The translations under genes and the position numbers were made by a program. A stretch of 64,000 bases of DNA from Isurus oxyrinchus (lineage: Eukaryota): positions 109,740,001 to 109,804,000 of the forward strand of contig JANJGN010000007.1 in NCBI GenBank assembly GCA_026770705.1, in the 5' to 3' direction. Of this stretch, positions 17,067 to 25,976 are shown in pieces (within the stretch, counting starts at the first letter, position 1; every line of letters starts with the position of its first letter). The notes under the pieces were generated by a model, which saw only the letters and a list, made by a program, of their open reading frames with translations, did not search any database and was not told where the DNA came from.

Positions 17067-17121
17067 ATGTCGATGAGACTTACAGTTCAGTACATGGCTC
17101 TTCTGGCCATAATTTTTCCAG
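17067..17121 (+). CDS. VJ-C1 Ig-superfamily receptor gene 1, exon 1: signal peptide (MSMRLTVQYMALLAIIFP)
   Basis: Hydrophobic leader, phase-1 donor CAG|GTACCG, 200-bp intron to the V exon, in frame. Confidence 0.8.
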
Positions 17122-17321
17122 GTACCGTGGTTGTTATATGCTCTGTTTTGGAATAGCTTAAATCGCATTTAACGCCCAATTGTATGCATTATAAAAATAC
17201 ATACTGTACTTCTCCAATTCGGCTGCATTTGTTTTTTAATTGTTTTTATATTTTTCTCCTTATAGTTAGCTTTCTTTCTCTGACGTATGCAACTGCTGTC
17301 ACCGTTCTTTTTTTTAAATAG

Positions 17322-17627
17322 CCGCCAAAGTAACTTCGAGCAAAGTGGATCAGTTCCCTAAACTCTTGAAGGCTGCCAGGGGTGACAATGTTTCCATGTT
17401 CTGCACATTTCCCATATTTGAAGACGCTCCTGAAGTTCATTGGTGGAAACGCAACGAAGAATCGTTTCTGGAACCGGACAGTCGGAAGCGAATCAATGTA
17501 AAAAGGGGAAGTAGTTCATTTGAAATTCTGAATGCAAGAGTTGCAGACTCCGGGATGTATTATTGTAAAGTAAAACATCAGCAAAACTCTATTGGAGATG
17601 GAAGTGGCTCCCAGCTCATTGTGTGCG
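17322..17627 (+). CDS. Receptor gene 1, exon 2: germline-joined VJ-type IgV domain
   Basis: ttcttttttttaaatag| ... G|GTAAGT; AKVTSSKVDQFP..GDNVSMFC..VHWW..ADSGMYYC..GDGSGSQLIVC has canonical Cys/Trp, DSGxYYC and J-like GxGSxLxV. Confidence 0.95.
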
Positions 17628-17989
17628 GTAAGTGTCATTGTACCGAGGAAAGGGAGTTCTTCAGCTGTGTGTGTGAGATATATAATTTGAACTTTTATCA
17701 CTAGATGAAAATCTGGTGATAGCGGATTCGTTTTCCACTGCTGGGGATTTCTTTTCATTGACCTGGATGTACAACGGCAGTCGATTCATTGTCGCCTTTT
17801 TTGATCAAGACCAATTTCACCTTGTCTCTCCTTGCCCTTGTGACATTCCAAAGTGCTTTTCGGTGCAGTTACAATTGTGACTGAACCAAGATACTGGAAC
17901 ATAGTGATGACTGTTTAACCCTTAGTTTGAAAATAATCAATGGGATGAGATGGCCAGATTCCTTCTCACCAAAACAACGGCACCAAAGT

Positions 17990-18135
17990 GCGAAATGGGA
18001 ACAATTTTAATGTAAAATCAAAACACTGCGGATGCTGGAAATCTGAAATAAAAATAGAAAGTGCTTGAAACAGACCTGTGAGCATCAGAGGAGAGAGAAT
18101 TAACGTTTCAGGTCTGCGAACTTTTATCAGAACAA
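17990..18135 (-). mobile_element. Penelope-type 3' tail fragment
   Basis: Reverse complement reads ctgataa..gacctgaaacgttaattctctctc..gatgct..tttcagatttccagcatccgcag, like the other PLE termini. Confidence 0.6.
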
Positions 18136-19958
18136 TTTTAACACCTTCTAAGTCGACTCTTTTATAAAATATTAAACACCATCTAATCAGTCCCAACAAA
18201 GTGCCTTCATCATAAATTCAGGTGAACACTCCCCTTCTACAGACAGCAATATTCCACACACAAGATAACTTGTTGGCACCTGCTCAAAATTGCCAATTGA
18301 ATCATTCAAGTGCCCGAAATTTGAGATGGACATGAAGGGAAAGGAACCATAGGACTCAAGAGAATGGAATTAAATCGGATAAACGGAGTTGAGGGAGGGA
18401 TCAACGATAATCTAAATAAATGACAGAGTATGTTCGAGGCAAGGAATAGCCTACTACTGTTCTTATGTCCGCAGTTTATGCTGTGCAATTGTATCCATTG
18501 ATAACTTGTTTGAAATGCCAAACTATTTCCACAAAGGAATGAGAGGAGGAGATGTTTATTTTACCGTCAATGCTGGATTCCACCCCAAGTCCTAGAGCTT
18601 GCGGGGCAATTCAGGCGCCCAATGTTTGAAACTCCGCGGTACGCCAATGGACTTTTTCTGATGCACTCACAACTGGTAAAGTGGAGGCAGGCCACCAACA
18701 AACATTCCTATAAACGCCTGGGTTCCCATGTTTGTAACTCATGATTTCCATGCACACTCCTCATAGGCAGACGGACGTTATGGCATAAGGCTAAGGGACC
18801 ACTGGCTACTGTCTTCTCATTGGGAATTCTGTCGCATTTTGTATTGTACCAAAAGCAGATCCATGAGAAAAGAATGGTGAAATTCTGAGTCTTTGCTGGA
18901 AATGAAAACTCACATAATTTTGAAAGTTAATAATGGCTCTAATTTAATCATTTTCTTTATCCACAATTCAAACATGTGAAGAAAAGATATGAATGAGATT
19001 GCTTATAATAAACAGCAAAATAATACAAACCGAACAACGGACTTTACTTAGTTAAACAGTGATTGGAGATCGAGCTGAAACAAGTTCACATTGCTAAATG
19101 TTGAATGTAGGACTGACATTAAGAAACTTCTACAGGCAAAGCGCGTTCAAAAGACCAAATAAAATTGTAGAAGGGCAAAACCTCTGGAGTTATATAAGAC
19201 ATGCACTTGATTAAAGATTTTCTGTTCGGTTTCACTCATCTGCATGGATGTTGTGATCTACACACCAATATATAATTGCCACTAAAGCATTTTCATGATC
19301 AGAAATGTGTTTCAGCCCTCGGATTTCCTTCTAGGGAAAGTTCTTTTTGTAAAGGCTGTACGATCAGAAATCTCCACCATAGAAATGTATAATCGATGCT
19401 AACGCAAGGATTTGAATCGATACATTTATCAACGTCTTTTCTGGAATCCTTAGAGACGTCGGGCATATTTCAAGTGCACATCTTCTCAATACTAATTGTT
19501 TAAACGAGCTATGTTTTGCAACATATGAATTATTTGGAAAACGATAATTTAAAAAAAAATAAACACAAAATGTTTAGTGGGACAATGATGATGACAGAAA
19601 AAGGTGAGATTATCCCGCGGTTCGTGCGGACTTGTTTACGCTCTCTCCCATAGATTTGGATAAGGAATCTCACTGTTGCCAAAATCAATCCCACCCCAGG
19701 AGCGGATTTTCCATTCAGAGCAGTGGTGCGTGCTTTGCGAATTTTCAACAGCTCCAGAAGATTCATCCTAGATGTGTATTGTTTGCAATGCATCCGGGCA
19801 TTTTGCCGTTCGCCGCAAAAAGATTTTCAAAATAAATACAAACACAAGGTTTTAAAAAAAACGATAGCGTGGATTATTATTGTCACATTAGGAATATAAC
19901 ATCATAACGGAGGGAAACAAATGACATTGTGCTCATTTATTCTTTTTCTCTGTTAAAG

Positions 19959-23594: not shown

Positions 23595-23702
23595 ATGCGG
23601 GTGTCAATATTAAGCTCATTTTTGGATATTTGGCAGGCGGCATATTGGCAATTTCACTGTTGATAATTATTTTGACGAGACTCAAATTGAAAGCATCAGC
23701 TG
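23595..23702 (+). CDS. Receptor gene 1, exon 4: transmembrane domain (uncharged, GxxxG)
   Basis: cccttag|AT...G|GTAAGA; DAGVNIKLIFGYLAGGILAISLLIIILTRLKLKASA, hydrophobic span followed by basic stop-transfer residues. Confidence 0.9.
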
Positions 23703-24477
23703 GTAAGAACATTTTTTTATTTCGCCGCATTCTTCTATTTTCTAAGGCCCAGATATACGTTAAAATACATAAAGGACAGATTCATTGTGAGGGACTAAAG
23801 AGGACCTTGCTGCACCTTTAAAGAATGAAGCTGATACCACAAGAGAATTATGTGATTGGCAGTTGAAATGACAATGTAAAGCGGACTTTGAAATGCAAAT
23901 ACTTAATCTTCTCATTATAACTATCCACTTAATTATACAGTTCCATTTTGCTACATCAGGAATCGTTATGGTTCTGTTTTTTTTTAAATAACATCAATGC
24001 GGGTCCAATTCTTAGAATGTAAACACATTTTGAGTGGACTTAGGCTTTCTGTAGTAAAGTAAAACGGCTGATTTCGAACTGTTAACCGGTTTTACATCTC
24101 CTCCGGATTTTCTTTCCATTGTAATGTTGCGACCTCTTGCCGACTCTTTGCCGACTCTCTGTCATATGCTTCACACTGTCGCACAAAAGCAAGATCTACT
24201 CCATTGGCTACAGCGCCACTGAGGCTAATGAGAAGGCAATGCACAGTACATTGCAGCTGATATTGCTGAACACCTTCAGACATCATGGGCGGCATTTTAC
24301 ACCTGCGGAATTTTATGGTCCAGCCGCAGTCAATGCACTTTTGAACGGCTCGCCACATTTTACGGGGACGTAAAATTTTCTCACTTTATATACAGTAAGT
24401 ATGTTTTGAATCGAAAGAATGATACTGGCTTTGCTGGTGCTGATTCTGTTAATCAAGATGGATTTGTTCCATTTTAG

Positions 24478-24521
24478 GTATTAATAGAAATTCCGTGGAA
24501 GCAGCTCACAGAGAACAGCCG
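24478..24521 (+). CDS. Receptor gene 1, exon 5: short cytoplasmic exon (GINRNSVEAAHREQP)
   Basis: tttgttccattttag|GT ... CCG|GTAAGA; phase 1 in, phase 0 out, open. Confidence 0.75.
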
Positions 24522-25839
24522 GTAAGATTCTTATATTCCAAAAAGGTGGCAGGGAGGGAGGAGGTGGTGTGCAGGAGGGGATACCAAAAAATGCTATATT
24601 TAGTAGAGAAGATATTAATTAGATTTCAAATAGTCATAGAAGGTTATAGCACGGAAGGAGGCTATGGTGTGCCTGTGCAGCCTCTTTGAAATAACTACCT
24701 AATTAGATCCAATCCCATAAACTTCACCTATAGCTCTCATAATTTTATTTTCAAACATTTCTCCCAACCCCTATTTGAAAGTTTAATTTGAATTTTCTTC
24801 CGCCACCCTTTCAGTCAGTGCATTCCAGATGACAACAGTAGTCTATGCAAAAATCTTCATCTTCCCCTGATTATTTTGCCAATTAACTTAAACTTGTGTC
24901 CCTGAATATCGATGAAAACAGCTTCGCCTAATTTACTCGAACGAAACCTCTCAGAATTTTGAGATTAAATATGTTCTTAGCTTTCTCTGCTATAAGGGGA
25001 ACAATAGTAGATTCTATAATTTCCCTGACATCACTAAAGTTCCTCATCCCGGGTGCCATTCCAGTAAATCTCTTCGCCAAGGCCTTGAAATCCCCCATAA
25101 AGTGCAAAGACTGGAATGGTACACGATAGCCCAGGTGATGCTTGGCCAGTGATTTCTAAATGTTTAGCACTATTCTCTGTTTCTGCATTCTATTCCTTTA
25201 TTTACAAGGCCAAGATAAATAATTATCTTTACAGCAACATACACTTCTGACCACTCCCCCTTTCATAGTTCAAATTATTTCTAAAATGGGAACTATCCAG
25301 TTGCCCGATTGCTTAATGTAGACATTATTAGCACCAGAAGACAGATCAGGAGGGTCCCAGCTTCTGTCTCCACTCCTGTTGTATTGGTTGATCCAGGCTC
25401 GGCAACTGCTTCAGATAGTTCAATTGGCCTGAAATCTATACCTCTGGGTTTAGCAGTGCCGCTTGGAAGTCGAGCTGGTGATTGGGGACGGGGTTGGGGT
25501 GTGGGGACGGGGTGCTGTGAGGGAGGGTTTCTCAGGGTCCTGGATGCGGTTTGCCACCTCGAGAAGGAACGAGGACAAACTCAAACTTCGTTGTCAGGTT
25601 TTCCAATAGGCCGGACTGGCTGAGGAATATAAAGACGACCATTGCCCCAAGGAGGTGAGGGGGAGCTGGAGTCAATTGGAAAGGAGAAATGTGTATTATT
25701 CATTAGATAGTTATTAGCGGTTCCAATCAGAAGATGGAAACTGAGAGGAAATTTCACTGCAGCCTTTTTAAAACATCGGTTGTCTCAAACAATGAGTGAA
25801 CAATGGATTAACAAGTGATATTAAATTTGACTTTCACAG

Positions 25840-25976
25840 AATAAACAAAGAGGCGGAGATAACTGATTTACGCCGCTCCGCAGCTTGCTGATTCAAAGAA
25901 AACATCAAAATCTAAACAGAAAGACGAACGCGCCACATATGCAGAAGTAAACCTGTCAAAGAAAGAAAGAAGCTGA
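25840..25976 (+). CDS. Receptor gene 1, terminal exon: reads NKQRGGDN* (stop 25864-25866); a shifted frame encodes LIYAAP...ATYAEV to stop at 25974-25976
   Basis: Acceptor tttgactttcacag|; two SIRP-like tyrosine motifs lie in a frame blocked by TAA at 25860-25862. Confidence 0.75.

Follow-up and report, generated by a model that had tools for sequence, protein, structure and literature searches.

A germline-joined VJ-C1 receptor gene with a broken cytoplasmic tail in Isurus oxyrinchus, a further member of an apparently undescribed chondrichthyan family

Introduction

SIRPs combine one V-set with two C1-set domains and are found in inhibitory, charged-transmembrane and tail-less versions (PMC12975943). 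UrIg2 is an antibody-like chain with the layout V-C1-C2-C3 (Flajnik et al., 2023, 2025; PMC12227049), and germline-joined VJ-C1 genes are a class that has been searched for clues to the target of the RAG transposon (PMC12227049, PMC10751288). Here we describe a gene with one such V(J) exon and one C1 exon in Isurus oxyrinchus, in a stretch of 64,000 nucleotides (assembly GCA_026770705.1, contig JANJGN010000007.1, positions 109,740,001 to 109,804,000 of the forward strand) that is referred to below as the window. The gene lies on the plus strand at 17067-25976 and was read from the sequence as a leader, a V, a C1, a transmembrane (TM), a short cytoplasmic and a last exon. It falls within a family of membrane proteins of sharks, rays and chimaera whose intact members carry a tail with several tyrosine motifs, and the reading frame of its own tail is broken. 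We tentatively interpret it as a retained, tail-less receptor of that family.

Gene structure

The exon structure is directly observed, with exon phases of 1-1-1-1-0 along the gene, and comprises the following elements:

Exon 1, 17067..17121, plus strand: start codon and signal peptide MSMRLTVQYMALLAIIFP, ending in phase 1
Exon 2, 17322..17627 (306 nt), plus strand: V domain including its own J-like G strand, IGDGSGSQLIV; a Cys follows at the V-C1 junction
Exon 3, 19959..20255 (297 nt), plus strand: C1-set constant domain, VPPSPLKIL...YTCLVYHVSLEVPASVSYTIDQ
Exon 4, 23595..23702 (108 nt), plus strand: stalk, transmembrane helix LIFGYLAGGILAISLLIIIL and the basic stop-transfer sequence TRLKLKAS
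Exon 5, 24478..24521 (44 nt), plus strand: short cytoplasmic exon (G)INRNSVEAAHREQP, ending in phase 0
Exon 6, starting at the conserved acceptor, 25840..25866, plus strand: NKQRGGDN and a TGA stop at 25864-25866
Distal-tail remnant, frame-shifted, 25863..25976, plus strand: LIYAAPQLADSKKTSKSKQKDERATYAEVNLSKKERS*, located by the distal-tail profile and tblastn

Every donor is GT, in four cases gtaag, a pyrimidine tract precedes each acceptor, and the window contains no runs of N. About 270 codons are open across the leader, V, C1, TM and exon 5, and the ectodomain is free of stop codons. The leader is akin to the orthologue leaders MSVRASVQYMALLGMVWP and MSIRVTAQYMALLGLIWS, and exon 5 has counterparts in S. 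torazame (GNNRNSVESAQREEP) and Heterodontus (GSKKDSAEAGQAEEQ). The interior of the helix encoded by exon 4 holds no charged residue, and the exon is recognized by the family TM profile (25.3 bits, E 1.6e-6); a Tyr occupies the position that Cys has in the GCAGG motif common in the TM segment. The canonical model comprises 837 nt and encodes 278 aa without a tyrosine motif, a length computed from the exon coordinates; the exons were translated, searched and folded singly.

An earlier sequence-only reading of this DNA had proposed six exons in phases 1-1-1-1-0 with a leader-V intron of 200 bp. The intron was recovered as described (17122-17321), and exons 1-5 are exact and bounded by good splice sites, but the frame and tail assigned to exon 6 did not hold. 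The same reading had described one V and one C1 domain followed by a TM segment, joined in the germline of a cartilaginous fish, and the exon read-out agrees: a scan with the C1 profile found no second C1 exon in the introns between 17.6 and 23.6 kb. An alternative exon encoding a charged TM segment was sought within the gene, and none was found apart from one weak TM-like piece. This piece, at 24389-24478 on the plus strand and directly 5' of exon 5, is a hydrophobic frame, ERMILALLVLILLIKMDLFHF, with a stop before it and a weak likeness to the R...D(H) type of TM segment carried by charged-TM members of the family (E about 0.5). It could be the relic of an alternative TM exon, or chance.

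V and C1 domains

The domain types are also a direct observation. Exon 2 matches the Pfam I-set (3.2e-10) and V-set (2.3e-9) models, and exon 3 matches C1-set at 1.5e-9 with 38.5 bits, where the cut-off is 21, which bears out the earlier assignment of a true C1-set domain. The J-like GxGxxLxV motif (GSGSQLIV) sits inside the V exon itself. No heptamer/nonamer pair resembling a recombination signal sequence (RSS) was present on either strand of 16800-26200, and the whole window holds only one. The V exon thus carries its J-like G strand already joined, as had been claimed, with 0 RSS-like sites around it. A rearranging antigen receptor was considered as a candidate identity and is ruled out by these two features, the J-like strand inside the V exon and the lack of any RSS-like site in 16800-26200.

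AlphaFold2 models built with family alignments as input reached a mean predicted local distance difference test score (pLDDT) of 91.8 for V and 90.0 for C1. The V domain is compact (101 residues), and its DSSP trace includes no strand assignable as C''. Its nearest folds are the V domain of shark IgNAR (VNAR), the V-alpha domain of the T cell receptor (TCR) and the first Ig domain of NCAM, which are effectively tied (Z 14-15, root-mean-square deviation 1.6-2.1 A), with 24-28% sequence identity to the VNAR and V-alpha structures. The best Foldseek matches of the C1 model were MHC class II beta2/alpha2, C-lambda/C-kappa and UrIg2, with template modelling scores of 0.83-0.86. Given these structural matches of V and C1, the "antigen-receptor architecture" described for the gene is real at the domain level.

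A predicted homodimer of the C1 exon scored 0.18 against a mark of 0.32, a result that counts neither for nor against pairing. Separately, we noted a Cys codon at 17624-17626, after the J-like strand (QLIVC/VPP), a position held by Tyr, His or Phe in orthologues. Of 68 family models, 7 share a Cys at this position, and most of these come from Callorhinchus. On the more speculative view of the family given below, this unpaired junction Cys (LIVC/VPP) would allow covalent dimers.

A chondrichthyan VJ-C1-TM family

When the C1 exon was searched with HMMER against 1.84 billion representatives, 190 matches reached E<=1e-10. Dozens of these are proteins of 250-400 aa with a single C1 domain at residues ~122-218 and 45-69% identity, and every single-C1 relative that was looked up is chondrichthyan, from sharks (Heterodontus, Scyliorhinus, Mustelus, Heptranchias, Chiloscyllium, Hemiscyllium), rays (Mobula, Narcine, Pristis, Hypanus and others) or the chimaera Callorhinchus. 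Those from any one species lie on one large contig. Automatic annotation has named them 'tyrosine-protein phosphatase non-receptor type substrate 1-like' (SIRP-alpha-like), 'NCR3LG1-like', 'tapasin-related protein-like', 'immunoglobulin lambda-1 light chain-like' and 'TCR beta chain-like'. The prediction that such genes would be labelled generically as SIRP-like or B7H6-like was therefore borne out, since orthologues are annotated as SIRP-alpha-like or NCR3LG1-like, among other names. Word-indexed searches with P0154, the family alignment and the P0079 tail returned no relatives beyond cartilaginous fish, which reflects the reach of the searches rather than absence; the search with the P0079 tail alone yielded 39 candidates and 2 matches, both chondrichthyan.

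The family alignment shows a constant core of leader, V(J), VPPTPLKI, C1 and TM, followed by a tail that carries four to five tyrosine motifs; those of intact members include xAYxxLNL, TVYAQT, LTYAALxL and xVYAEV. The tail of SIRP-alpha has four motifs, ITYADLNL, TEYASIQ, LTYADLDM and SEYASVQ, that would correspond to these in kind and order. The domain order of the window gene equals that of P0154, P0022, P0044 and others, and its leader, VJ, C1 and TM exons are joined in phase 1. Where the family signature consists of WW(K/R) in strand C, DSGxYYC, GxGSxLxV, the VPPTPLKI hinge and YTCLVSHxSLxxPA, the window gene has HWWKR, DSGMYYC, GSGSQLIV, VPPSPLKI and YTCLVYHVSLEVPA. In the family alignments, all invariant and nearly invariant residues are kept in both the V and the C1 exon.

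Heterodontus XP_067906043 and Scyliorhinus proteins are the nearest relatives of the gene. Identity to Heterodontus XP_067906043 is 78% in V and 68% in C1 (the V exon is likewise 78% identical to Heterodontus P0154), and identity to S. canicula P0174 and P0175 is 73-75% in V and 70-71% in C1. In the V tree the window gene belongs to a 6-row clade with S. canicula P0174, P0175 and P0005 (SH-aLRT 93), and this clade is nested among shark sequences whose sister group consists of rays; in the C1 tree its neighbours are those of the V tree, within a 27-row clade with a support of 99. Separate V and C1 phylogenies had been proposed as a check, and the V and C1 trees built here both place the gene inside the chondrichthyan family.

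Members of the family differ in how they end. According to a rough regular-expression parse of 68 models, 34 have a TM segment and tyrosines resembling an immunoreceptor tyrosine-based inhibitory motif (ITIM) or switch motif (ITSM), 15 have a charged or His-bearing TM segment and no tyrosine motif, and 14 have a TM segment with a short tail and no tyrosine motif. The ectodomains of S. canicula P0174 and P0175 are almost identical, while P0174 has an ordinary TM segment and a tail ending two residues after exon 5, and P0175 has an R...DH transmembrane segment. Tail-less forms hence occur elsewhere in this orthologue group, as P0174 illustrates.

As a side observation, P0174, P0175 and P0005 of S. 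canicula and P0176 of Heptranchias share near-identical ectodomains that are followed either by an ordinary TM segment or by a segment such as RLVLGFLVILGLLGIIVDH. The latter type has an Arg at its outer end and Asp-His at its inner end, an unusual charged TM for a would-be activating partner.

The broken tail

The acceptor AG of exon 6 lies at 25838-39 (tttcacag/AAT) in phase 0, and the exon reads AAT AAA CAA AGA GGC GGA GAT AAC TGA. Its product, NKQRGGDN, aligns with TKQRGGDN or TKQRSGEN of orthologues. The tyrosine stretch LIYAAPQL...ATYAEVNL (25863-25973) is in a frame other than that of exon 6. For comparison of the frames, the catshark and horn-shark orthologues read TKQRGGDNKLTYAALQ; the tail of the Heterodontus orthologue in the ancestral frame is ...TKQRSGENQLTYAALQLADSKKTSKPKQDKSAVYAEVNVIKKERS, that of a second Heterodontus gene TKQRGGDNKLTYAALQL, and that of S. 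torazame P0201 ...TKQRGGDNKLTYAALQFADSRK.... In tblastn, the S. torazame tail falls in two frames of the window, SQNKQRGGDN*FT and LIYAAPQLADSKK..., and the distal-tail profile detects the shifted piece with 50.6 bits (E 5e-16 in the gene, 2.5e-14 in the whole window). The frame break itself is thus observed directly; on the simplest reading it would stem from a net loss of 3n+1 nucleotides near 25863, the simplest case being a four-base deletion that takes in a conserved Lys codon. In addition, the Leu at position +3 of the ITIM has been replaced by Pro, giving YAAP where the family has YAAL.

The longer tails of orthologues also contain mid-tail exons, with the motifs xAYxxLNL and TVYxQT, of which tail profiles found no trace in intron 5 or in the whole window. 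The Heterodontus model P0171 runs from exon 5 directly to the last exon, and because it likewise has no mid-tail exons, this layout may be ancestral here.

Two statements of the sequence-only reading are contradicted by these findings. It had assigned the gene a tyrosine-motif tail, whereas the stop at 25864-25866 precedes the motifs, which lie in the other frame and one of which is degenerate (YAAP). It had further taken the protein for an inhibitory receptor, whereas this copy lacks the mid-tail exons and has its ITIM-like tyrosines outside the reading frame. With its tyrosine tail out of frame, this copy is not the inhibitory receptor that it was taken for.

Surroundings of the gene

The window contains no conserved flanking genes. 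Other copies of the family and pieces of transposons were found in it:

Older decayed family copy, 36905-38316, plus strand: V fragment 36905-37036 (E 0.026) and a C1 split into 37998-38090 and 38083-38316 (40 bits), interrupted by stops
Dead paralogue, V, 44960-45352, plus strand: split by two stop codons into 44960-45094 and 45173-45352
Dead paralogue, C1, 46773-47156, plus strand: open, C1-set 3.4e-8
Dead paralogue, TM exon, 47327-47479, plus strand: Arg-bearing LLVSRHLLGILIIMVLMIIV, with an in-frame stop
Reverse-transcriptase fragment of a long interspersed nuclear element (LINE), 16457-16930, minus strand: RVT_1 1.2e-5, ending 137 bp 5' of the receptor ATG
Second reverse-transcriptase-like piece, 15911-16309, minus strand

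The closest public protein to the paralogue at 44960-47479 is P0059, with 64-66% identity. Since the LINE fragment ends 137 bp upstream of the ATG, a good part of the presumed promoter is transposon-derived. On the minus strand of 13800-16950, a motif scan, the family V profile and inspection of the frames revealed no intact Ig V exon, a search from which a divergent or decayed V could escape.

Two further features of the window were noted. A 489-aa open frame at 53238-54704 on the minus strand falls within 52-58 kb, the one GC-rich part of the window (GC 0.47-0.51); neither Pfam nor the PDB sequences gave a match to it, and it may be a transposon open reading frame. Long repeats of the (CA)n/(TG)n type at 6500-7200 and 59766-60236 give rise to spurious His/Thr- and Cys/Val-rich frames of 100-180 aa on both strands.

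Interpretation of the tail-less copy

We favor, at a probability of roughly 0.4, the interpretation that the gene is a retained tail-less receptor of the chondrichthyan VJ-C1-TM family. Intact family members end in a multi-tyrosine tail of the SIRP-alpha style, and in this copy the signal peptide, V, C1 and TM are intact and the cytoplasmic tail is disabled: the 3n+1 loss in the last exon brings in the stop after NKQRGGDN and shifts the two distal motifs out of the reading frame. A 278-aa tail-less type I membrane protein would be the most likely product. Its V domain, we infer, would still bind the ligand of the family, and the protein would not itself recruit SH2-phosphatases, so that its role would be that of a decoy or adhesion form like SIRP-gamma and not that of an inhibitory receptor. 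We likewise infer that the gene is expressed and that intact relatives signal. Several points weigh against this interpretation. Five small runs, each holding 1-2% of words, gave no transcript evidence; contigs over 19950-25949 were found only on the intronic repeats at 20350-20950, 21350-21750, 22550-22950 and 24750-25150 and none on exons 3-6, and the few joints in those contigs are repeat chimeras without splice-site ends, which is no evidence either way on expression. An assembly error might also account for the frame break. An in-phase alternative acceptor at 25884 would restore ATYAEVNL. The tail remnant is about 70% identical to Heterodontus (26/37 codons) and has no stop, as would be expected if the break is recent or if the stretch is still translated. 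Furthermore, a recently disabled pseudogene would look identical.

A young pseudogene, out of use and with an ectodomain that is intact only for want of time, is somewhat unlikely in our estimate, and it would account for the frame-shifted last exon, the Leu to Pro change in the ITIM, the Cys to Tyr change in the GCAGG motif, the dead neighbouring paralogues and the LINE reverse-transcriptase fragment upstream, as well as for the lack of any covered exon in the RNA-labelled runs over 19950-25949. It fits less well with about 270 open codons, all family-invariant residues and good splice sites, with terminal branches of ordinary length (0.092 against a median of 0.08 in V, 0.19 against 0.14 in C1), or with the tail-less members in the annotated gene sets of other species. 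That the protein is still of the inhibitory, tyrosine-bearing type appears unlikely. It could be so by splicing to 25884, with one motif, or through the frameshift being an assembly error, with both distal motifs; the acceptor ccgcag/CTT is in phase 0 and follows a stretch moderately rich in pyrimidines, the joint 24521-25884 would read ...REQP/LADSKK...ATYAEVNLSKKERS, and the remnant is open to the stop position of the orthologues, KKERS*. However, the 25840 acceptor is conserved, has the better tract and leads into the orthologous TKQR... frame, and a 4-nt loss is atypical of homopolymer sequencing error. The 25884 splice would restore ATYAEVNL only, which fits neither consensus, having Ala at -2 and so lying outside both ITIM ([ILVS]xYxx[ILV]) and ITSM (TxYxx[VI]), and LIYAAP has no hydrophobic residue at +3. 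Very improbable is an orthologue of B7H6 (NCR3LG1), a V-C1 ligand for a putative NKp30-like gene upstream. B7H6, too, is VJ + C1, and several family members have been auto-named NCR3LG1-like, but the 60 best solved-structure matches include SIRP-alpha, SIRP-gamma and lambda chains and no B7-H6, a search of the minus strand of 13.8-17 kb by motif, family HMM and eye met only LINE debris and no intact V-like exon, and the family tail is SIRP-alpha-style.

Significance of the family

The locus alone adds one more, partly damaged, member to the family, which is apparently undescribed though publicly annotated. What lies behind it is a large, conserved VJ-C1 family of sharks, rays and chimaera hidden under five different automatic names. 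No paper describing the family was found in the literature searched, and for this reason it merits a proper description. In a single orthologue group, one and the same ectodomain is found joined to an ITIM tail, to a charged TM segment or to no signalling tail at all (the window copy and S. canicula), and such mixing of ectodomains and tails is the pattern of paired or decoy receptor evolution. A more speculative view, to which we give little credence, is that the family is a cartilaginous-fish survivor of a VJ-C1 stock ancestral to SIRPs, PRARPs and perhaps the rearranging receptors, with its VNAR/TCR-V-alpha-like V and lambda-like C1, and that tail-less copies were selected as decoys beside inhibitory and charged-TM siblings. 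If tail-less decoys are indeed kept beside siblings with near-identical ectodomains, this would be a pathogen-driven paired-receptor system.

Comparison with named receptor families

Sequence comparison with the PDB, in which matches among the best 60 per search were considered, placed a lambda chain construct of an antigen-binding fragment (Fab) among the best matches of the family profile. UrIg2 scored 119 bits, a value summed over three C domains, SIRP-alpha (2wng) 99.3 bits over V+C1, SIRP-gamma 88 bits and many lambda light chains about 88 bits, so that 2wng is the best single-receptor match, by a narrow margin over lambda light chains. With the single orthologue P0154 as query, SIRP-alpha reached 44 bits and lambda chains 41.8 bits. 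The neighbours of the orthologue in the ESM Atlas are SIRP-alpha clusters (0.96). In the C1 tree the nearest outgroup is formed by lungfish 'SIRP-alpha-like' C1 domains, by path length only and in a tree built without authentic SIRP sequences. The SIRP-alpha scores, the Atlas clusters and the lungfish outgroup may be taken as leads to a kinship with SIRPs, not as proof of it, and among solved structures, SIRP-alpha and lambda light chains appear about equally close to the window gene.

With immunoglobulin light chains (IgL) and TCR chains, the gene shares the layout of leader, V(J) and C1, the phase-1 exons and the J-like GxGxxLxV motif. C-lambda is as near to its C1 as any other domain, and VNAR and TCR V-alpha provide the closest V folds. 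It differs from these chains in having V and J in one germline exon with no RSS, in having its own TM and tail, and in lacking a membrane-proximal interchain cysteine of the Ig/TCR type. UrIg and UrIg2 resemble it as non-rearranging VJ-C1 genes of elasmobranchs, and UrIg2 (9dmx) is among the best C1 matches; in contrast to the several C domains of UrIg2, however, the only C1 exon of the window gene is followed by a TM exon. B7H6 has a comparable VJ + C1 ectodomain and TM, and some family members bear its name automatically, yet the tail type of the family is unlike that of B7H6, and B7-H6 chains were not among the best 60 PDB matches in any search, whether with the window exons, the family profile or the orthologue. 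PRARP A and B (Fu et al., 2019, J Immunol 202:1992, as cited in PMC10751288), known from chicken, reportedly have the same architecture as the window gene, although no head-to-head A/B pair was seen at this locus.

Resemblance to SIRPs extends from a V with a J-like strand, a C1-set domain and a TM segment to the multi-tyrosine, ITIM-type tail of intact chondrichthyan family members. The differences are that the window gene and all its close relatives have one C1 where SIRPs have two, and that the V of the window gene is short and VNAR/I-set-like. On this evidence we would file the gene in an unnamed chondrichthyan family that appears SIRP-like in how it works and that may be kin to SIRPs or PRARPs. 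Like the SIRPs, the chondrichthyan family has inhibitory, charged-TM and tail-less versions, and in outcome the window copy, which has no in-frame tyrosine motif, resembles SIRP-gamma.

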